Below are positions 10,699-23,700 of a stretch of DNA of 64,000 bases, in pieces. The stretch is taken from NCBI GenBank assembly GCA_965240325.2, contig OZ251227.1, positions 2,232,001 to 2,296,000 of the forward strand, read 5' to 3'. This DNA comes from Rebecca billardiae RCC1528. Taxonomy: Eukaryota > Protista > Haptophyta. A program made the position numbers and the translations under genes. The notes under the pieces were generated by a model that ran no database searches, was not told where the DNA came from, and was given only the letters and a program-made list of their open reading frames with translations. Position 1 is the stretch's first letter; each line of letters begins with the position of its first letter.

Positions 10699-12288
10699 CC
10701 GCGCCCTGCGCCCCTGCCCCTGCACCGGGCTGGCGACGAAGGCCGAGATGTGACGATGCTTCTCGAAGGAAAGTTTGATGCGGTTCTGCTGCATACCGCC
10801 TTTAATATATATAATCATAACCGGCCCCTGCGACCGAGGTGGACCCAGCCGGGAGAGAGGAGTGGACCCACCTGAATGCAGAGACGCCAAGCGGCCAGTT
10901 GCCGGCTCGAAGTGCTGCGCGCAGCCTCGTCACAGGGATGAGGCCAACGTGGACTGACCACCCAGGTGTGCAGACGTGGCTGCCGTGCCACACGTCCGTG
11001 GACGATGTGAAAGGACTCTTCGCTCAGATACGTATGGGCTGTCCGTAGTGATCGGACCGACAAGGCCGACGAACGGCCCGTGCGCAGCGACTCAGGAACT
11101 ACTGAAGCCTGGCCGAGCTTCCGTGTGTCGCCGTTAGCGCAAAGAGCAGATTTCAGTTGTGCGTGCTGGCACTGCCATCACCACCCATCTCACGGCTGTC
11201 TAGAGTGCGCGGCGTGATGACCCGCGCGAGTCGGACGGGAACCTGTGCTTGGTATGATGTACAGCTAGTCGCCGCTGTGACGAGCCGAGTGCGTGGCCGC
11301 TGTGGCGGGCAGTGCGTCCGAGTGCACCACAGCTCGCCCCACCCGCCGGCCCAGGGCAGTCCCAGCTGACATGCCAGCCATCGGCCGACAATCAGTCAGC
11401 TTAGACACCGTCCGGTCAGCTGGCTGACAGACAGAGTCGGCTGACAGGCTCGGACCGAGTGTCAGCCGACCGCACTCCTCGTCACTGGTGAGTCCGGCTG
11501 GGCTGACTGACAGTGTCAGCTGGCCGCACATCGGCCCCTTGCCACACGGCTGACCGCCAGCCGGCGCTGTCAGCCGTCAGCTGACAAGGGAGCTCGTAGA
11601 TAGGCGATCAGACAGCCGGTCTGCGTGACGGACAAGGTGACCGATAAATCGGGCTCAGCGCGGCGCGCGCGCTGGGGCGGGGCGCAGCCGGCCCGACCCG
11701 TGCGTCGTACTCGCTGTACTGGCCGTCCTCAGAGTCAGAGTACCAACCAATCAGTCAGCTGCGCAGCTCGGCCCGCGGATGCCCGCGCGACGAGCTGGAC
11801 GCGCCAGCTGCATGTGTGTGTGCAGGTGGCAGGTGCTTCGTAGCTTTAAAAGTGTAGCAGCGCTCGCGGTTGGAAAAACGCAAGTACAGTTTACTATGAT
11901 TTAACGTGCACACTTGGTTAAGGCGTGATTTGAAATCTGGAGCGATCTCGCTTATTCGGAGTAGTATCCATATATGCTCATTGACGACGTGTATACTTGC
12001 ACAGTACTGTGCGGGTCCCAGTCGAAGGTACCGATCATCGACTCACACTAGCTATCAAGCAGTTTCTTAAGAACATAGCACGGAGTGCTACTGCGGCTCA
12101 TAATTAGTGTTGGCCATTTGTGAGCTTCGTCGTCGTTGACGAACGCACCCAGCGAAAGTTTCTCACCAGCTTTCTAGTAAGTACACCCCCATTCTCAGTT
12201 CGCACGACGCCACACTGCTCGGGGCATTTTTCCGCGTCGTCGACCGGGATCGACGGCCACACCAGGAAGACAGTGCGCACTGGCGGCC

Positions 12289-15200
12289 ATGGCCGACGCG
12301 TTATGGGTGGCTGCGCGGCGGCGACGAGGCCGCACCTTGAGCGGGCTTGTCCTGCTGCTGTCATTCGACCTTGCGCGCCCCCTCTCTGTTGGCGTGCTCA
12401 GCTCGCTGGGCTGGCGGAGAGGGGCCGAGGGCATGGTGGCGGCATGGCTCGCCGCACAGCACTTCAACGAGCGGAATGCGAGCATCGTGCCGCGCTTCGC
12501 GGAGCTGGGCGCATGTGACGTGCAGCTCAACCTCACACTGATCGACATCCACGGCGACCCTAAGGAGGCGATCGACAAGTACGTGCACGGGCGCGAGGCG
12601 TACGGCTTTGAGCTGATTGCGGGCGCATATCGCTCGGCGACCAGCCGGCCGATGGCGATGCTCTCGCCGTACCACGGGGTGCTGCAGCTCGGGCTCTCGT
12701 CTTCTTCGCCAGAGTTTGCCGACGCCTCGCTCTTCCCGTACTTCTCCCGCTGCCAGCCCGCGGACGACCTCTCCTCCGAGGTGATCATCGAGCACGTCCG
12801 GCTGCACGGCTGGCGGCGCATCGGACTGGTACGCGCGCGAGAGAGAGAGAGAGAGGGCGAGAGAGAGAGGGGGGGAGTGGGGAGGAGGGAGGAAGGCACG
12901 TGCGCACGGCGCGGGGACGCGCGGCGTGAGCGCGTGTGTGTGACTCATCCGCCCGACGCGCCGCTCGCACGCAAACGCGCGCCTGCGCCTCGCAGCTGTA
13001 CGCAGACGACGCCTGGGGCTCGGCGTTCGCCGAGGTGCTTCAGGAGGAGAGCGCGCGCGCGATGCTCGACATCGTGACGGTCCGCTTCCACCCTGACGAC
13101 GACGACTCCATCGTCGCGGCGGTGGAGACGATGCGCGCGGGCGGCGCCGCGGGCGAGCCCCCGCGCATCCTGATTGCTGTCGCCCTCTTCCGCGACCAGG
13201 CGCCGCTGCTCGACGCGGCCGCGGCCGCAGGGCTCGCCGGGCCCGAGTTCCACTGGGTGCTGGCGCACCCCTTCACCATACCCAACCTCGCGGGCGCGAG
13301 CGAGGGCGCGAAGCGCGCGCTCGACGGCGCGGCGCACGTCACGGCGACGCCGGGGTTTGCGGGCGACGCGCGCATCGCGCGGCTGCGCTCGGCGCTCGGC
13401 GCGCTCAGCCACGCCGATCTCGAGCCGGAGCTGGAGGGCGGCTGGGCGGGCACGTCTGCCGAGTGGGCCTCGTTCCAGGACCTGGCGGCGCGCGCGCACG
13501 TGGCGCCGTTCGGGTACGACGCGATGGCGGCGATCGGCCTCGCCGCGTGCGCGTGGACGGGCGAGGAGCGCGCGGGCGCGCCGCGGCGCACCGCGGACGA
13601 GCGCAACGCGCACGTGCGCGCGCTCGCCTTTGAGGGCGCGTCCGGGCCGCTCGAGTTCAGCGCGTCGGGCGACCGCAGCCGCGCGAGCGCAAAGTACGCG
13701 ATCAACAACTGGGTGTATGACGAGCCGAGCGGCGAGCTCCTCGAGCGCGCCGAGGTGCTGCAGTGGGAGGGCGGGCAGATCCGCCAAACAAACGCGTGGC
13801 AGTGGGCCAGTGGCGCAAGTGCGCCGCCCTCGGACGGCCTGGGCGACGGCTCGGGCGCGGGCTCGGGGGCGGGCCGGTCCGGACAGGTGGCGCGCGGCGC
13901 GGCGGGCGGCGCCGGGCAGCGGACCATCGTGCAGCACGCGCCGAGCGCGCCCGCGGTCGACGCGGCCTTCCTCGTCGGCGTGAGCCTCGGCTCGGCCTTC
14001 AGCCTCGTGCTGCTCCTCTTCTGCGCCGCGCGCCTCTACCTCGCGTACGGCCGGTTTGTCCACCTCGTGCGCGCGCGCGCCGCGTGGCGCGCGGCCGAGG
14101 TGGAGGCGGCGCTGTCGGACCGGCGGCGGCTGAGCTTCCCTCTGCACATGCTGCCCGCGAGCACGTTCCTGCAGAGCGGCCAGCTCCGCCGCTTCGAGGA
14201 CCTGCGCTCCGCCGCGTCGCACGTCGTGATCTCGCGGCTCGAGATCAGCGACGCCTTCTTCAGCGCCAACCGGCTCATCTTTGTGAGCCACCAGTGGCTG
14301 GGCGCGGCCGAGCCGGACCCGGCGCGCGTGCAGTACGGCGTGATGGCGCGGGCGGTGCGGCACGTCGCCGCGCTGAACGGCTGGCCTCTGGACATCGTGC
14401 ACGTGTGGGTCGACTACAGCTCCGTGCCACAGGAGCACCCGGGCACGCAGGAGTTGGTGCGCTGCGCGCCGCGCGCGTCGCCGGCGGCCGCGGCCGCGTG
14501 GCCGGCCGCGCGCGTCGGCTCACCCACCCACCGGCTTCGGATGGCGCGACGCCGCGCCGCGCCGCGCCGCGCGCCTTGCCCGCGCTACGCTCCCGCAGGC
14601 CATCGACTCTCTGGCGCAGTACGCGAGCATGGCACACGCCTTCCTGATCGTCGTGCCGGACGCAGTGCACGCGGAGACGGGAGAGCGCTGTGGCGTGCAG
14701 TCGTACCAGGTGTGCGCGCGCGGCGCGCGCGCCCGCGAGCTGCGGAGCTCGGCGCGCGAGCGCGACGCTGCCTCCCGCGCGCGGCGCAGGGGCTGAGCCG
14801 ACGGGCGGTGGCGCGCCGCCTGCTCTCGCCGGCGCGCACGCGCGCAGCGGCGGATGTGGACGCGCGCCGAACAGGTGGTCTACCTCTTTGCGCACGGGCG
14901 CGACAACATGTACATAGACGACGGCGTGAGCTCCGCGCCCGTCCTCGTCGACTCGGAGTGGCTGTCCCACTCTGCGTTTGTGTTCGAGGTGAGCGCGCGC
15001 GTGCGCGCGTGGTGGCACGGGCGCACCTGGCTGGCGCGGGCGCAGAGCGCGCGCGCAGAGCACACGCACGTGGCGACGCGCGAGAGAGAATGGGGAGGGC
15101 GGCGCAGCGCGTGCGCGCACGGCGGCGACGGGTGCGCGCAGGCCGCGCGTGCCTCGCGCGCGGCGCTCACTCACCGCTCCGCCCGCGCACGCCCGCGCGC

Positions 15201-16893
15201 GCGCGCCGCCCCGCGCCGCCCCAGGGCGAGTGCTCGTGCTGCGAGCGGCTGCACTGCTTCAACGGCGAGGACCGGCATTACTGCGACAGGCAGATGCTCG
15301 TCCGGCCGCTGATCGGACTCTACGGCGAGGCGCTCGCCGCGCACCTCAAGGCGCAGGATGGAGGCGAGGGCTTGGCGCGCATCCGCACCGTGCTTGGCGC
15401 GCTCGGCCAGGGGCTCGGCGGCTCGTGGCGCGGCAGCGCCGGCGGCGGCCTCGAGAGCACGCACCTGCGCCCGGGCGAGTTCTCGGGCAGGCACGGGCAT
15501 CGGCGCGCGTACCGGCTGCCGATAGCGGCCAGCCGCGCGCCCTCGCGCCGCTCGACCGCCTCCTCCGACCACGAGGGGCAGAGGCTGGCGCGCGCGTGCG
15601 CGGGCATGGGGTTCGCTGGCCTCACGCCGACGCGCCGACCGACCGCCTCCTCCGACCACGAGGGGCAGAGGCTCGGGCTGGCGTGCGCCGGGCTCACGCG
15701 CCGGCACTCGGCAGACCCGGAGCTCACGTGCCGACACACGCCGGACCCCGAGGGCCAGCGCTTCGCGGCCGCGTGCGCCGGGCTGGGCTCCCCCCGAGCG
15801 GCGATGCCAGGCGCGCCGCCGCCGGCCGCGAGCTGCGCAGAGTCCGATGCGGAGCGCGGGCAGTCTGCCTCGTGGCGGCACTTTCGGCCCGGGCCCGAGC
15901 CTGAGCCCATCCCCACGCTCGACCTGTCGCGAGGCGCCGGCCCTCCTCCCGGCCAGGCGGCGGCCGGGGCGAGCACGCCGGGTGGCGGCGCGGCTGCGGC
16001 CCCGCCCGCGGCCAAGGTGCAGCACTTCAGCGTCGCCGAGTCGGAGGCGGACTGGGAGCCGCCGACGCCGCGCAGCTTCGGGCACTCGATGAGCCGTCGG
16101 CTGGGCCTTGCGCACGTGCGCGACCTGCCGCCGCCCTTCCTGGATATCATCGTGCGCGCGGCGCGGCGCGGCGCGCGCCGACTCGCGCGCCCACTCGCGC
16201 GCCGCGCCGCGCTCTGAGCGCACGCGACCACGCGCGCGCACCCGCTGCGCGCAGGAGGGCCGCGACCCAGAGGCGATGGCGCGCATGTTCCCGCCTACAC
16301 TCGAGCTGCGCACGCGGCACGGCAGCGAGACGGTGGAGCTCTTCGGCGATCTCGTCTCGGAGATGACGAGCCGGCAGCGCGCCGTCCACGCCGAGGTCCA
16401 CGCCGGCGCGCACTCGCCCGCCGCGCCGCACGGCCAAGCACGCGTGCTCGGCGCCAACGGCGGCAAGGGGGGCGGCGGCAGCGAGCTCAAGCGCTTTCGT
16501 GACATGCACCTCGAGCGCGCGCGCGAGCGGCTCAGCAGCTGCAGCCGCCCTTCCACGCGCAATTCGGGCGCGGGGCCCGCAGAGAGAGAGAGCCCACGTT
16601 TGAGCGCTTCGGGCAACCAGCGCGCGGCCGTCTCGCCCACGATCGTGCAGGTCTCGGCCACGGCGCCGAGCTGCGAGGCTGTGCTCGGCGGCGGCACGCG
16701 CTCGTCGTCGCGGCCGGCGGCGCTGATCCCGCCGGCGTCGCCGCATGCCGCGGCGGCGCAGCTGGGACGCAGCCCGTCCGCGCTGCTGCCTCGTCCGCCG
16801 GCACCGATGGCGCTGTCCATGCTGGCGCCGTCTACTGGCGCTGGTGCGAGCAGGCGGGTGACTCCGGCGGTGATGACTGTGGCCTCGCCGTGA
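12289..16893 (+). CDS. Multi-exon single-pass receptor: ANF-receptor/Venus-flytrap-like ectodomain + TM + HET(TIR-like) domain + disordered tail
   Basis: Ectodomain motifs IAGAYRSATSRPMA, SSSSPEFADASLFPYFSRCQPADD, GWRRIGL-LYADDAWG, FGYDAMAAIGLAAC, FEGASGPLEFSASGDR. TM at about 13968-14048. Cytoplasmic IFVSHQW...DP...VWVDYSSVPQ...AIDSLAQYA...SYQRRMWTRAE. Inferred introns 12829-12995, 14457-14598, about 14710-14848, about 14989-15223 and about 16152-16253. Confidence 0.75.
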
Positions 16894-17213: not shown

Positions 17214-17774
17214 TGTCAAAGTCCAAGGCAGCCATCGGCGCCATTCCCCAGCTCGAGACTTTAATTCCAAGGCGCTGAGCAATTTCAGCCGCCAAGCTAC
17301 AGACTTTCATCATGCAATTCAATCGGTTTCACCATTCAAGAGCAAGGCCAACAGCAGCCATTGTTCATGCAAGTTACTACTCCAAAGATAAGGAGCATCG
17401 GCACACACATGAGGTCTTCGGACTACACATCCAAGGGTCCAGGGATTCTTCACCACTTGGGAAGGTACCCTGAACTGGACCAGAGACTACCATGCAGTCA
17501 TCAGAACTTTCTTTTCATTTCGAGGAGACGTCCCGATCATCACAGGAAGCTTTCGTGCAATGACCCGAAGGCAATCAACGGAATTCCGAGAGCATTCCGA
17601 CCGAGGGAAGCAGGCACACGAAGATTCCAAAATCTTCGATGCCACTTCCATCAGCTTTCACCAGACTGAAACATCAGCTTACTTGAAACCAGCCATCACT
17701 CATCAGCAAGGGGGACGCCCCTTCGCCCCACGAAACACAGTAAGGACCGCACGACACGCGCGAAGCGCCAATCA
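17214..17774 (+). repeat. Copia 5' LTR
   Basis: Direct repeat of 24441-25004. Confidence 0.95.
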
Positions 17775-20700
17775 TGAGCTCACGGGTGCACAACGTCGTC
17801 CGATCCTACGATCAGCGCAAGCGGACCCGCATCGATCGGCTCCGCCACCACGGGAGCCCCATGCTCCTCGACATTGACTTCGGCGACAGCGCCGGATCGG
17901 CACGGAACGACACCGGCCGCAAGGAAGACATCGAGTTCCCATCCTCGCGATGGTACGACCAGGGCGGGAGCCCGCGTACCTTCTACGAGGACCGTCGCAG
18001 CTCCATCGAGAAGCGCGACCGCCACGACGGACACTACCCGCGTGGCGAGCAAGGCCCCAGTCGCCAAGGCAACGGCGGCGGCCGGCATCACGCACCGACC
18101 GAGTACAAGCACCACCGGCGGAGCGACGACAACCTCGTACCCTACGACGGGACGCGGTTCGCGGAGAGCACAAGGCCATCCAACTCCGCGCATGCGCACT
18201 GGCACCCGCCCCACTCGCGGGGCCACCGATACCATCCCTCGCATCACTCGCTGAGCGAGGCCGAGCGCGCCGCGCCGCGCACCGGCGCGCGCGCAACTGA
18301 ACCCATGACGATCCCCAGCGCGCAGGAGCGATCGTCGGCGCACGACAAGTACCCAAACGGCCCGCGGCCCTCCGGCACACTGGGCTGGGACTACAAGCAG
18401 CCCGTCGTGCTCCCTGAGCAATGGCGAGTGCCCCCGTCCTCGCAGAAGGACGACTCGCCGTCGTCGCAGTCGCTGCATCGCGACGCTACGACACAGACGG
18501 AATCCCCGGACTCGGCGTCGCCGACTGCGACTGGACACGACCAGCATGGAGGCAGCAGCGTCGCAGCGCCGGAGGCGGGCGCGATGGCGGGCGACCTCCC
18601 GACCATCAGCGTCGTGACCGACTTCAAGGAGCCGCACAGCCACTACCCCTTCGACCCGGGCCAGATCCCTGGCGAAGAGCGGTCGGAGCCGTTCGAGGAG
18701 TTCGCGCCGCAGCTTGACGATCTCGCGCGCGGCTCGACCCCGCCGCTGGACGCGTTGAGCCTCAATGATGTCCTCAGCGTGCTCACCGATGCGGCCATGG
18801 ACATCAACGGACTCGTCTACCAGGATCCGATGGACATGGGAGACGACATCCTCACCATTGGAGGTATGTGCAGCGATCCGACTGATCGGCCCCAATCCAT
18901 CTTGTGCTGCAACAAGGCAGCATGGGAACACGCTGCGCGCGACAAGCATCGCATGTCCTCATACCTGTGCACTTACCCCCTCCTGGCTGTCAGCAGTTGG
19001 TATGGTGTAGGCGAGACCTTCGATTGCATCATCCCGGAGATCCCGGCGCGCAAGAACATGGGCAACGGCATCTACTGCAGCCAGTGGAGTGAGATTGACG
19101 ACGATGATCCGAAGTCGCGCCAGCCATGCGACAATCAGTCGTGCACATCGATGCATTGCACCCTCGAATGCATCATCTGTGGGATGGGCAGAGTCTGCAG
19201 CTACCGATGCGCAGACGCCATCCAAGTTCAGCATCAGCTCGAATGTGAGCAGATTATCCAGTTTGCAGCGATGAACGACGGGATTGACATCGATGATGAT
19301 GGCATTCACTTCCACCGGCAGGACGGACCCGTCGCAGCGGCTGATCGCCGCAGCCTGAGCGTCGTGAACGACGCAGGCGCCAGCCTCGATGATATTTGCC
19401 CTTGGCGGCCATCCAAACGATGCACTATCTACTCGGGAGGCTTCATCGCAGCAGCCGCAGAGCGGCAAGGTCACAACTACACAGTTGGAGACTATGTGCG
19501 GGAGAGGGACGAGCTTCACCAAAGCAAGTTCGATCTCATGTTCCATTGTAATGACGCACTCCTACAGCCAGGTGTCGCATGCTTCCTGCACAAAGAGTTC
19601 TATGGGCTGACTTCTGAAGCGAGCGAGGGACACTCGCCGGCTGACGACGGCCCACCTGGTGGTGTCACAAACTACCCACCTGCCACGACTGGTGACGACA
19701 ACAGCGCACAGCAGAGCAGCGATGGGGACGAGTCTTCTACATCGTCGGACATGGGCAGCTATGCCACAGCAGAGGACCACATTGAGACAAGCTTGCTCGA
19801 CGCGTCACCACGAACGCGCAGAAATGGAGGCAAAGCTTGCATCACCTACTTGCCCGACGCACATGCAATGATGGCTGTGCAGACAAGCCAGCCTGGCGTC
19901 GGAAGCTACAAGCTGAATTTCTTCACAATCAAATCGAAAATGGCCATCCACGGAGCGATCAAGGACGCAGTCACCGAGGTCAAGGCTTCCTTCAAGGGAA
20001 GAGCGACCGACACTACGTCGTCCATGGTCACCCTCGTCGAGGCCAGGCTCTCCGGATACGCGCTGGCCGAGGCCGCAGTGTGGACAGCCGAAAATGCTAT
20101 TCGGGAACCGTACGCTAATGCATTCGCAAACATGGACGCAGACACCACCATCATGCAGATGACGATCGTCTACGAGCGATCGGTGGAAGTACTTTTCAAG
20201 CGTATCAAGGACATGATGCTGCCGAGTCTCTTTTCGTACCTCGAGTCGAAACGGCACATCGTGAACCCGAATGAGAATTTCCTGAATTTACATACTCTGC
20301 TCGAAATCTTCGAGCACGAGCTGAACGTATCGACCATGTCGGAGCTCCGAGCTGAGTTCAAGAAGCTCTACCCGGACCGACCGACCCCGGTGAGCGGCCC
20401 CGAGATGATCAAGCAAACGGTGGAGATGGTACGCGCATCACGCTATCGAGAGCTAGACGACGCCACACTCCTCGTTTTCAAGTTGTACAACGGGATGCAC
20501 GAGCACCCAGAGGTCTACTCGACCGTCATCTCTATTTACGGTTCAATGTCGCCCCAGCAATGCGTGGCGCAGACCGAACAGCTCACCGCCCAGATCGAGG
20601 ACGCATACAGGCGTTGGACTCAGTCGCCCAAGGGACGACAGGCAACGCAACGTGACCCCAAGCGGGGCGGTCCCGCGCACGCTCTCAATACTGAGGAGGC

Positions 20701-23700
20701 GGACCGCCGACAACCAGCCGTCACGTGCTCGCACTGCGGGCTGCGCAATCACACCGCAGAGCGGTGCTGGAAGCTACATCCAGACTTGCGGCCACCCAGG
20801 CCGCCCGGCGCACCAAGACAGGGCAACTTCAGGCCGCCCGCCAAGCCCGGCGGGCGCGACGGCAAGTTCATCAAGGTACCTCCGCCCCCAAAGCGGGCGG
20901 GGAGGCCGCGGGCCCAGATGGTGCAAGACGAGGACATCGACCCGGAACCCGATGATGCAGATCTCGAGCCGACGCAATACGCGTATCTGGACTCGGGCGC
21001 GTCCCAATCATTTGTCGATATCAACCTCGGCCTGCTACACAATGCTCACCCGATCAGCATGTCTGTCAAGGTTGCCAAGCGCGACATTGAGCTACACGCA
21101 TCCAAGGCAGGCGACATGTACGTATACTTACTCGACGCCGACTCAGACACAACCGTGCCGGTGTGCCTGGAAAACGTCGTCGGTGTCGAAGATCTCGATA
21201 CTACTCTCTTTTCAGTCAACGCGTTCGCCGCGGTCGGAATGGCTGTGGTGTTCGACGAACGACCATACATCCGCATCGGCCCCAAGAGGGTTCATTTGCG
21301 CCCCGACAACACCGTCGGATTCAAGGCAGTCGTACCCAAGGCCGAGACAGCCATGCCGGCCACCGCGGACGACGTGCCACCAGACGTCGACCCGATCAAG
21401 AACGGGCGGAAGATCACGCTCTGGCAATCCAGACTAGGATATGCCGATATCAAGCGTGTACGCGCAACCTACCGCGCGAACGACAAGATGTCGGAGGCAT
21501 CGCCCTGCACGTACCAGCCCTCCGACGTTGCCAAGTTCAAGGCCAAGCCGTTCCCGGGCACACGTGAGAGAACAACTCGACCGCTCGAGATGCTCCACAA
21601 CGATGTCATCGGGCCCATCAACGGGCTGCCCGCAAAGACTCCAAGGTGGGGAACTCTATTCATCGATGATTTTTCCGGATACATGCGCTTCTACGACATG
21701 CAAAACAAGGCTGAAGCGCCGGAGAAGCTCGACCTCATGGCCAGCGAGATGGGAGCCAACTCTCTATCCGCCACCATGCAGAACAAGGGCATCGCCGGAT
21801 GCACCATTCACCTCGACGGAGGCCGAGAGTTACACTCAAAGAATTGGAACCGAGTCCTTCGCAGGTACGACATGCTATGCAACTACATGTCGCCCCCCCA
21901 CACGCAGCAGCTGAACGGCGTCGCCGAACGTGGCCTCGGAGTCATCATGAATGACGCCAGGACAATGCTGTACCTCTCAGGCGTACACCACAAATGGTAG
22001 TATTGGGCAGCCAAGTGCGCTGCCGCGCAACGCAACCTGATGAGCAAGCATCCTACCAGCGATGGCAAGCTGGTTTCACCGCACGAGCTGATGTTTGGCA
22101 CCTCGCCCGGGCCCTTCCTGCAAAAGCTGAGAGTTTGGGGCTCGCCCTGCATCTACCTCGTACAGTCGATCAACAAGCAGAACAAGCTACTCCCGCGCGC
22201 GCGGGAGGGCATCTTACTGGGATACGGATTTGACGGTATCTTCGAGCGAGGCACCATCAAGCGATCGCACGGATACATCGTTTTGAGTGCCGACGACGGG
22301 AAAATCGTCATCACTCGGCACGTCAAGTTCAACGAGCAAGTCATTTTGGATCGAATCTCTACGCATTTCAAGGAGATCCGCGAAATTCGGGACCCCCTGC
22401 TGGCGTGGAGCGCTCGGCGACCTCCTCAAGGTGCAGATGCTGGTAAGACCCGTGACAGCAACACCAACGAGGAGGGCGACGAAGAGTTTGCCAGCAGCAG
22501 CAGTGACGCCGACAGCGACTCCGAGCGCGGAGGAGACGATCCGCCATCGCCGGACGAGGAATCAGACGACGATGACAAGGACGACAGGGACAAACCCGAC
22601 GACGACGAGAAGGGAAATGATGGCGACGGCGACGACGGTGATGGAGACGGCCCCGGAGCTGGAGGCAGACCATCGCAGAGCAATACGCCACCGCAGCCAA
22701 AGCAGCCTCCTCCCTCCGCCGATCGCCGCCCACAGCGGACTCGCAACATGACTGGCAAGTCATACTTCCCGCCGACGCGGCGCGCGCGCGCGCGCGCGCA
22801 GCTCGCGCAGCTCGCATCAGATATCCCGGTACCTACATCGTTCAAGGAAGCGATGGAGAGCAAGCAAGCATCCGATTGGACAAGGGCTATCATGGAAGAA
22901 TACGAGGCCCACGACAGGCTGGGCACATTCACGCCCGTCATTGTTCCCAAAGGGAAAGCAATTATCCCATCGAAGCTGGTCTTCAAGGTCAAAGCCAATC
23001 CAGATGGTACCATCGAACGGTACAAGGCAAGATTGGTTGGTCAAGGCTTCCGCCAGATTCAAGGAGTCAATTACGACGAGGTGTTCTCGCCTACTATCCG
23101 GTACGAGAACGTACGCCTCCTATTGGCACTGACGACGGAGCTACGAACACCAGAAAGACCTTGGATCATCCACTCCGCAGACGTGAGTACGGCGTACCTC
23201 CAAGCCCCATTGGAGGACGGCCTGAAGATCTACACTACGCTACCCCCGCTGTACCCGTGTGCCCTCAAGCCACCCGAGGGACACGTGGTCGCGGCTGACT
23301 GGGATATGGCCCTTCCAGGATTTAAGCAGAGCGGCAGACGATGGCACATCCGCCTCAGCCAGAAACTGCGAGAGAAAGGATTCAAGAAACTCACACAGTC
23401 GGAGTGCATCTTCGTCCGCACCTCAGGAGACATCATCGACGTCATCGCAGTGTACGTGGACGACCTGCTTATTCTGAGCAGCTCCCCCGACAGCGCAAGA
23501 CCCAGCTCGATTATTGAGGAAATTCGAAAAGAATTCACCCTCCGGGATCTGGGACCAGCAACGACTTTCCTAGGCATGAGTATCGCCCAGGGGCCCAAGT
23601 CGACGACTATCTCCATGTCACAGTACATCACCGATCTCCTCAAGAAGCACGACATGAGCGACATTACGCCCGTCGACAACCCGTGCAGATCGGCAGCAGA

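Follow-up and report, generated by a model that had tools for sequence, protein, structure and literature searches.

A predicted receptor gene lies at positions 12289-16893, on the forward strand, of a 64,000-nucleotide stretch of the very GC-rich genome of Rebecca billardiae RCC1528, a haptophyte-type alga (contig OZ251227.1; the whole stretch is referred to here as the window). Judged from its sequence, the locus is one intact gene with five certain exons and a probable sixth, and its product is a type I single-pass membrane protein of ~1270 amino acids, in which a Venus-flytrap ectodomain is followed by one transmembrane (TM) helix and by a cytoplasmic domain distantly related to HET and TIR domains. 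We read the whole as a Venus-flytrap receptor in which a remote HET/TIR-like nucleotide enzyme would serve as a general output for chemosensing, and we give this reading a probability of about 50%. Our view of the cytoplasmic domain as an output module of general use in receptors, and probably an enzyme, draws on its invariant residues, its predicted fold and the variety of sensors to which it is joined. The parts of the gene are as follows.

12289..12828, forward strand: exon 1, with the start codon, a signal-like hydrophobic N-terminus and the first part of the ANF_receptor domain; GT donor at 12829
12523..13715, forward strand: ANF_receptor (Venus-flytrap) ligand-binding domain, split by intron 1 and matched by the genome search at 12523-12843 and 12993-13715
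12829-12995, forward strand: intron 1
12996..14456, forward strand: exon 2, with the remainder of ANF_receptor (to ~13715), a Gly/Ser/Ala linker, the TM helix with a juxtamembrane helix after it, and the HET/TIR-like domain up to about its middle, a part that carries the motifs FVSHQW, PDP and WVDYSSVPQ
13962-14036, forward strand: single TM helix (residues ~503-527), followed by Arg-rich positive-inside residues
14073..15356, forward strand: HET/TIR-like cytoplasmic domain of ~250 amino acids, split by introns at 14457-14598, 14710-14847 and 14989-15224
14599..14709, forward strand: exon 3 (AIDSLAQYAS...VVPDAVH...C..SYQ), helix B and strand C of the HET/TIR-like domain
14848..14988, forward strand: exon 4, with RRMWTRAE and the next strand; Glu codon at 14869-14871
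15225..16151, forward strand: exon 5, with a Cys/His cluster (15231-15287), the LIGLYG end of the domain (to ~15356) and a low-complexity tail with an imperfect repeat
16255..16893, forward strand: probable exon 6, with an FP..(16)..LFG motif, a disordered tail and the stop codon at 16891-16893

The GC content of the gene block is 0.67-0.80 and falls on either side (~0.49-0.51 at 11800-12250 and 0.50-0.55 beyond 16900), which delimits one block the size of a transcription unit. Joining 12289-12828, 12996-14456, 14599-14709, 14848-14988 and 15225 onward yields an open frame in which no exon contains a stop. The four introns of this certain part of the model are GT..AG introns in phase 0, 138-236 bp long; every intron of the gene has a high GC content (0.75-0.87) and a donor of the GTGCGC or GTGAGC type, and intron 1 holds a (GA)n-rich microsatellite (window 12838-12875, forward strand). 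The splice model rests on homology with intronless paralogs, with a family profile exon by exon and with collinear foreign proteins. The genome also has two paralogs, L002 (G000:C7:136078-139398, minus strand) and L003 (G000:C20:785612-788929), in which the cytoplasmic domain is free of introns and the same motifs follow one another without a break and in unchanged order. A six-frame search of the whole genome with a profile built from 112 family members (A3) matches 14073-14456 at profile positions 6-133 (exon 2; E = 8e-37), 14584-14709 at 129-170 (exon 3; E = 1.2e-8), 14845-15003 at 170-222 (exon 4; E = 3.4e-6) and 15222-15356 at 217-257 (exon 5; E = 1.9e-5). These four segments are successive and barely overlap, and the frame of exons 3 and 4 differs from that of exons 2 and 5. 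Foreign full-length proteins are collinear over the exon 1/2 and 2/3 joins (P0090 through its residues 121-249, 249-472, 591-706 and 707-743); the match of exon 1 to foreign homologs stops at 12831, and exon 3 is 54% identical to P0025, P0090 and P0168 over exactly 14599-14709. Unspliced read-through of the open reading frame (ORF) at 12936-16217 was considered and rejected: the stretches between the exons are Arg/Ala-rich and lack homology, and the conserved motifs lie in another frame. Positions of introns within the domain vary among the paralogs recovered by the profile, with common breaks at profile positions ~79, ~118 and ~170, of which the window gene has only the last, just ahead of the R-x-W-x-R-x-E motif.

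The original prediction, made from the letters of the window, had described a spliced ORF with a series of motifs, and all of them (FVSHQW, PDP, WVDYSSVPQ, AIDSLAQYA, RRMWTRAE and GECSCCERLHC..HYCD) are present in the joined exons. It had also assigned the Venus-flytrap domain (PF01094), one TM helix and the HET/TIR-like domain, in that order, to a single gene, which is borne out by PF01094 matches above the cut-off, by the shared exon 2 and by collinear homologs. An alternative hypothesis is that the receptor is an artefact of fusing two neighboring genes, one for a secreted or anchored binding protein and one for a cytoplasmic HET-like protein, or that it is a pseudogene. Because one uninterrupted exon (12996-14456) runs from the C-terminal lobe of ANF_receptor through the linker and the TM helix into the cytoplasmic domain, of which it encodes the first half (130 positions), a two-gene artefact is very unlikely. 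The same fusion recurs at at least seven loci of the genome and in many foreign proteins, and the invariant residues of the domain are all intact in exons without a stop, which leaves hardly any room for either version of this explanation.

Toward the 3' end the model is less firm. The likeliest join, which we regard as probable, links the donor at 16152 with the AG at 16253-16254 and would remove a 103-bp intron to give a total of 1272 amino acids. The donor reads GTGCGC, as in introns 2 and 3, and it is in phase 0, as is the acceptor. The exon 6 thus predicted contains MFPPTLELRTRHGSETVELFGDL, which matches the family consensus downstream of the domain (FPxxF...GxxxExRxLFGxL); F-P followed ~16 residues on by L-F-G is conserved in this position across the family, and is found only in the frame of 16255-16893. 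GC content stays at ~0.75 to 16900 and then drops. The 3' limit of exon 5 is uncertain: the exon could instead end at a donor at 15390, or it could continue to the stop at 16215-16217 (1081 amino acids). Codon-position GC in this exon is compatible with coding. Within the low-complexity tail (window 15545-15700, forward strand) there is an imperfect direct repeat of ~30 residues, R-R-S/P-T-A-S-S-D-H-E-G-Q-R-L..A-C-A-G, with a third, degenerate copy near 15740-15790. Further downstream on the same strand (window 17774-22000 and beyond), an ORF of >1400 amino acids has by eye the look of a Ty1/Copia-type retrotransposon polyprotein: it shows a Gag-like part that includes a CCHC-type knuckle, followed by integrase-like motifs, and its N-terminus carries a long and unusual extension.

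Both pieces of the ectodomain match PF01094 above its gathering score of 25.4 bits, and together they cover both lobes: the exon 1 piece scores 38.6 bits (E = 9e-10; profile positions 24-125 of 353) and the exon 2 piece 40.1 bits (E = 3e-10; positions 124-351 of 353). Since the two pieces cover consecutive parts of the profile, they also support the exon 1/2 join. On the Kyte-Doolittle scale (19-residue window), hydrophobicity peaks at 2.36 in the TM helix, the only strong span in the 1272 amino acids, with a weaker, signal-like stretch at the N-terminus. An ectodomain of this family is shared with class C G protein-coupled receptors (GPCRs), natriuretic peptide receptor guanylyl cyclases and ionotropic glutamate receptors. 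Unlike these, the window protein has one TM helix rather than a 7TM bundle or a pore, and the pieces scanned gave no match to an NCD3G, kinase-homology, cyclase or channel domain. The absence of a 7tm_3 or NCD3G match in those pieces and the presence of only one strong hydrophobic span in the protein set it apart from class C GPCRs. Kinase-homology and guanylate cyclase families gave no Pfam match at E ≤ 1 on exon 2, exon 4 and the first 90 residues of exon 5, the parts scanned, and the region in which a receptor of the natriuretic peptide type would carry its cyclase parts is filled by the HET-like domain. An ectodomain, one TM helix and a cytoplasmic domain of the TIR superfamily is also the plan of Toll-like and interleukin-1 (IL-1) receptors. 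The window protein differs from these in having a PF01094 Venus-flytrap ectodomain instead of leucine-rich repeats (LRR) or Ig domains, and a HET-like domain with enzyme features, without a match to any TIR hidden Markov model (HMM), instead of a canonical TIR; common descent of the whole architecture is unsupported.

The cytoplasmic domain belongs to a large family. Among 1.84 billion cluster representatives (of 50% identity clusters), a paralog profile matched 4498 proteins at E ≤ 1e-3, with 420 of them at E ≤ 1e-30. The domain occurs in haptophytes, diatoms and dinoflagellates; members whose source is named include Emiliania huxleyi EMIHUDRAFT_108458, Polarella glacialis (a dinoflagellate) and, among diatoms, Stephanocyclus, Coscinodiscus and Cyclotella cryptica, and every one of them is annotated as "hypothetical." In the numbering of paralog L003, the residues E48, S78, H79, W81, D88, Q126, R173, W175, R177, E179 and D252 are invariant in all 112 domain sequences, and W118 and D120 (W-x-D) are kept in 111. 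The Cys/His cluster noticed at the outset is real, with its C-C-H-C residues (C236, C237, H241, C251) kept in about 80% of the family, and the family has in addition an N-terminal strand-helix extension with an invariant Glu. The window protein retains all the invariant residues, the W-x-D pair and the C-C-H-C cluster; its sole departure from the consensus is a Thr for the near-invariant Cys beside W175, as in 4 of the 112 sequences. A set of invariant charged and polar residues such as this forms an active-site-like pattern.

Alternatively, the domain could be a non-catalytic adaptor that, like the TIR domains of animal Toll-like receptors, recruits partners with the same domain after clustering, the partners being its soluble relatives fused to Ank, TPR, LRR or MORN domains. 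Many soluble haptophyte proteins do carry the same fold fused to repeat domains, the predicted model has structural matches that include MyD88, TIRAP and TIRs of the IL-1R family, and an adaptor role has been proposed for HET (Dyrka et al., PMC4986451). However, 11 invariant, mostly charged or polar residues in 112 diverse sequences (S-H-x-W, D, Q and R-x-W-x-R-x-E) suit an active site better than a protein-protein surface, and we consider an adaptor improbable.

The only Pfam family that recurs member by member is HET (PF06985), with matches at E ≤ 1 in 44 of the 112 sequences (best E, 5.8e-5). The register is constant throughout, profile positions ~30-106 of 146 falling on the W-x-D..Q (WVDY..PQ), helix B and strand C part of the domain. 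The original prediction had inferred a HET domain, and of this the remote homology stands but the membership does not, as individual members score 13-18 bits against a gathering score of 22.5 and the Pfam threshold is not reached. The first and last HET blocks lie outside the HMM alignments; judged by eye, SHQW and RxWxRxE appear to resemble them. From these alignments, the relation to HET appears to be one of real but remote homology. Like fungal HET proteins (PF06985; HET-E/D/R, TOL, PIN-C and HET-6), the family appears to have an aromatic-rich end of strand A, W-x-D...Q after strand B, an L..Y..A helix and Y..R.W..xE in the same block order (the end blocks by eye), and it is likewise multi-copy and fused to variable sensor modules. 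In contrast to fungal HET, which is N-terminal on NLRs or occurs alone, the domain of the window protein follows the TM helix of a surface receptor. The family also differs from fungal HET in its N-terminal strand-helix extension with the invariant Glu, in its C-terminal C-C-H-C cluster and D...LGLY helix, and in its occurrence in haptophytes, diatoms and dinoflagellates.

The relation to TIR domains comes from predicted structure. At the level of sequence, TIR families (PF01582, PF13676 and relatives) gave no match at E ≤ 1 in the 112 members and none at E ≤ 10 in L003. PDB sequence searches with the ectodomain and with profiles A1 and A3 returned nothing meaningful; a word-based homolog search with exon 2 also found nothing, but Ala/Gly/Arg-rich words swamped its candidates, so that it is uninformative on absence. 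Canonical TIR_2 domains coexist with the HET-like family in this genome, at no fewer than 10 loci above the Pfam cut-off. Two canonical TIR_2/TIR matches lie on the same contig as the window (G000:C10:2301163-2301417, forward strand, and C10:2307700-2307900, reverse strand), 5-12 kb past the window end and ~55-60 kb downstream of the receptor gene.

An AlphaFold2 model of the L003 domain built on the 112-row alignment reached a predicted local distance difference test score (pLDDT) of 94.6 and a predicted template modeling score (pTM) of 0.90, and is the model used here; from a single sequence, the paralog domain reached a pLDDT of 37. Its topology is an alpha/beta sandwich with the N-terminal strand-helix extension and a long C-terminal helix. 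Structural comparison by VIA-align matched the model to the TIR domains of SARM1 (Z = 6.5; 105 aligned residues, root mean square deviation [rmsd] 3.6, 17% identity), Caenorhabditis elegans TIR-1 (Z = 6.4), SPARTA (Z = 6.2) and MyD88 (Z = 6.1), and to nucleoside 2-deoxyribosyltransferases (NDT; Z = 6.3). Matches to the SARM1, TIR-1 and MyD88 TIRs extend over 105-108 residues at rmsd 3.5-3.8 and are tied with those to NDT and to GT-B halves. Like catalytic TIRs (SARM1/TIR-1, plant TNL, bacterial Thoeris/SPARTA), the predicted model appears to have a three-layer alpha/beta fold with the same order of strands and helices over ~105-110 residues (Z = 6.2-6.5), and W-C-x-x-E at the start of helix C presumably resembles the plant TIR motif S-x-W-C-x-x-E. 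Unlike them, the family domain is about twice as long and lacks a TIR HMM match. Matches of the model in the ESM Atlas include haptophyte clusters with fusions to Ank, LRR (NLRC3-like), MORN and HNOB domains and two Ascomycota clusters, one of the TPR/Ank type (TM score 0.67) and one made up 100% of PF06985 (TM score 0.51 over 176 residues, with predicted models on both sides); feature searches of the Atlas gave as leads an ANF cluster and MORN-fused relatives. Together, sequence and predicted fold would place the domain in the HET/TIR neighborhood, in the TIR/nucleoside-deoxyribosyltransferase fold class.

Several results weigh against this placement and the reading built on it. Pfam assigned no family to the cytoplasmic pieces of the window protein or to the same region of L003, in the latter even at E ≤ 10, and a search of the whole genome with PF06985 gave no match. 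An hhalign comparison of the family with the genome's own TIR_2 domains aligns strands A, B and C and pairs the invariant Glu of the family with that of TIR, but at a probability of just 4%. The modeled domain is that of paralog L003, which is 44% identical to the exon 2 part of the domain in the window, and not the spliced protein of the window itself. Foldseek against the PDB found nothing at E ≤ 0.001 (E ≥ 0.11), its weak top rows being plant TIR domains. The top single match in VIA-align is a half-domain of the fucosyltransferase NodZ (Z = 6.8), and all matches fall below the tool's caution line of Z = 8 and possibly reflect just a common Rossmann-like arrangement; with every Z below 8, a fold class is indicated and not a family. 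The TIR-related fold proposed in the original prediction is matched by the resemblance of the model to TIR/NDT folds, but at middling Z scores of 6-6.5 and without a significant Foldseek match. PADLOC defense models gave no meaningful match. Finally, HET itself has no established activity (PMC12881547, PMC10197012), so that homology to HET gives no chemistry.

The NodZ match could mean that the domain is a Rossmann-like nucleotide- or nucleotide-sugar-binding module functionally unrelated to TIR or HET, whether an enzyme of glycosyl or nucleotidyl transfer or a regulatory domain that binds a ligand. The half of NodZ that is matched binds GDP-fucose, and halves of FUT8 (a fucosyltransferase half-domain at Z = 6.4), AtFUT1, POFUT2 and trehalose-6-phosphate synthase follow at Z = 5.2-6.4 and exceed the TIRs in their coverage of the model (residues 22-228). 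Yet these Z scores are tied within 1 unit with those of TIR and NDT, Pfam detects no sequence signal to any glycosyltransferase family, and the sequence signal that does recur is HET only. A cytoplasmic site on a plasma-membrane-type receptor is also unusual for such transferases, and we consider this explanation quite improbable.

Our preference for a general chemosensing output comes from the company that the domain keeps. The A3 search found the cytoplasmic domain at ~32 loci of the genome, and at at least seven of these, the window gene included, ANF_receptor lies just upstream on the same strand, with several tandem pairs; a tandem double ANF_receptor precedes the domain at G000:C24:1433582-1437524, C29:1321258-1324916, C30:43531-47618 and C10:56532-60359. 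In L002 and L003 the ectodomain, whose start lies outside the loci examined, is instead of the Bmp/PnrA type (PF02608, a nucleoside-binding lipoprotein family). A further paralog, L009 (G000:C12:756657-759827, minus strand), appears by eye to have a multi-pass GPCR-like N-terminal half, a HET/TIR-like domain (FVSHRW, WIDFACVDQ) and then an LRR-looking C-terminus, and a protein in the public collection (P0002) is 100% identical to it. Another public protein, P0001, shares the sequence of paralog L010, including the segment read through after FVSHQ; because it reads through an apparent intron, it represents a genomic call and not transcript evidence.

Beyond this genome, Pfam was run on 52 long relatives and on a second sample of 50 that overlaps the first. 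PF01094 was found in 6 of the 52 and in 10 of the 50. The other sensors among the 52 were Ephrin_rec_like (seven relatives), dCache_1 and Ig-like domains of the HYDIN/VesB type (four each), LRR_8, Phosphonate-bd and SBP_bac_8 (two each), and MHYT, 7tm_1 and NCD3G (one each); a second list of relatives adds OpuAC (betaine-type), Peripla_BP_4, Cache and Fea1-like domains. In the pairs compared, identity was ~25-35% in the ectodomain and ~35-54% in the cytoplasmic domain, which suggests a conserved output behind diversified sensors. Bacterial proteins with solute-binding protein (SBP), dCache or MHYT sensors (histidine kinases, chemoreceptors, GGDEF proteins) similarly join one cytoplasmic output to a wide palette of extracytoplasmic sensors. 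Unlike them, the window family is eukaryotic and has a different output domain, and the likeness is an analogy of design only.

The same family features could be read as those of a dedicated immune or cell-death receptor, in which a pathogen- or damage-derived small molecule dimerizes the flytrap and the cell is then killed or arrested by the HET/TIR-like domain in the manner of SARM1, plant TNLs or fungal HET proteins, for example through NAD+ depletion. HET is the sole recurrent Pfam relative, and in fungi HET domains suffice to cause cell death (PMC12881547, PMC10197012). By identity, the NAD+-cleaving TIRs SARM1 and TIR-1 are the closest structural matches, the family is multi-copy, and it includes LRR- and NLRC3-like fusions. 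Furthermore, addition of virus to Gephyrocapsa huxleyi induces, within 0.5 h, receptor-like TM "TIR" proteins, of which one has a leucine-binding-like ectodomain (PMC12489294). One of these, cogent1101_i1, is by its description similar to the window protein in haptophyte origin and design, and could belong either to the same family or to the canonical TIRs. Against an immune reading, most sensors that could be identified in the family bind nutrients or solutes (phosphonate, betaine, nucleoside, amino-acid-type, SBP_bac_8), the domain also stands behind dCache, MHYT, HNOB and 7TM modules that make up an ordinary chemosensing repertoire, and the PADLOC result offers nothing for defense. Because so many partner sensors bind nutrients or solutes, we judge general chemosensing likelier than a dedicated death switch, which we consider unlikely.

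Parts of this picture were known already. HET homologs in Haptophyceae were reported in 2014 by Dyrka et al., who placed HET in the TIR neighborhood (PMC4986451), and a similar receptor design, with a leucine-binding-like ectodomain, a TM helix and a TIR domain, was described in G. huxleyi in 2025 (PMC12489294); the TIR call for cogent1101_i1 rests there on an HHsuite probability of ≥50% to TIR Pfam families. We found no solved HET structure, and PMC12881547 lists it as ND. The literature searched contains no name for the family, no combination of flytrap, TM helix and HET-like domain as such, and no bench study of any member. The claim that no characterized example exists thus holds for biochemistry in that literature, but not for description, given the haptophyte HET homologs (PMC4986451) and the G. 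huxleyi TM-TIR protein (PMC12489294).

Taking the protein as a Venus-flytrap receptor with an enzymatic output, we propose the following mechanism. Flytrap ectodomains in class C GPCRs, natriuretic receptors and ionotropic glutamate receptors work as dimers that close on their ligand. On the strength of this established knowledge of flytrap receptors, a small solute would close the ectodomain of the window protein, and closure would change the arrangement of a receptor dimer or oligomer. This rearrangement or clustering could in turn switch on the cytoplasmic domain. Given the TIR/NDT fold class and the invariant residues, the domain may then act as an enzyme on a nucleotide substrate, for which NAD+ is the first candidate, with the Glu of W-x-x-x-E (WTRAE) putatively in the role of the TIR catalytic Glu. 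Across the family, the role would be general chemosensing of dissolved compounds, with defense or death signaling possibly one use among others.

For the question of how marine phytoplankton perceive dissolved nutrients, infochemicals and pathogens, the window gene offers a clean example of a very large family in which recognizable small-molecule sensors are joined to one conserved HET/TIR-related domain. If that domain acts only as an adaptor, the receptor would still represent a Toll-like design, independently assembled from different parts. If it is an enzyme, the family would constitute a new receptor-enzyme class, and its members would be tractable relatives of HET with obvious candidate ligands, in which HET chemistry could be tested directly. 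We suggest, tentatively and as a doubtful extension of the chemosensing reading, that the module is the catalytic output of a major but unrecognized class of receptor-enzymes in haptophytes, diatoms and dinoflagellates, in which solute-binding proteins of bacterial type and flytrap, Cache, LRR and 7TM sensors all feed one nucleotide-processing, second-messenger enzyme. In that case a second messenger would be made or destroyed, such as an NAD+-derived, cyclic ADP-ribose-like signal feeding into Ca2+ signaling, and these algae would sense amino acids, phosphonates, betaines, nucleosides and other compounds by TIR-type chemistry, of which death and immunity would be a special case.

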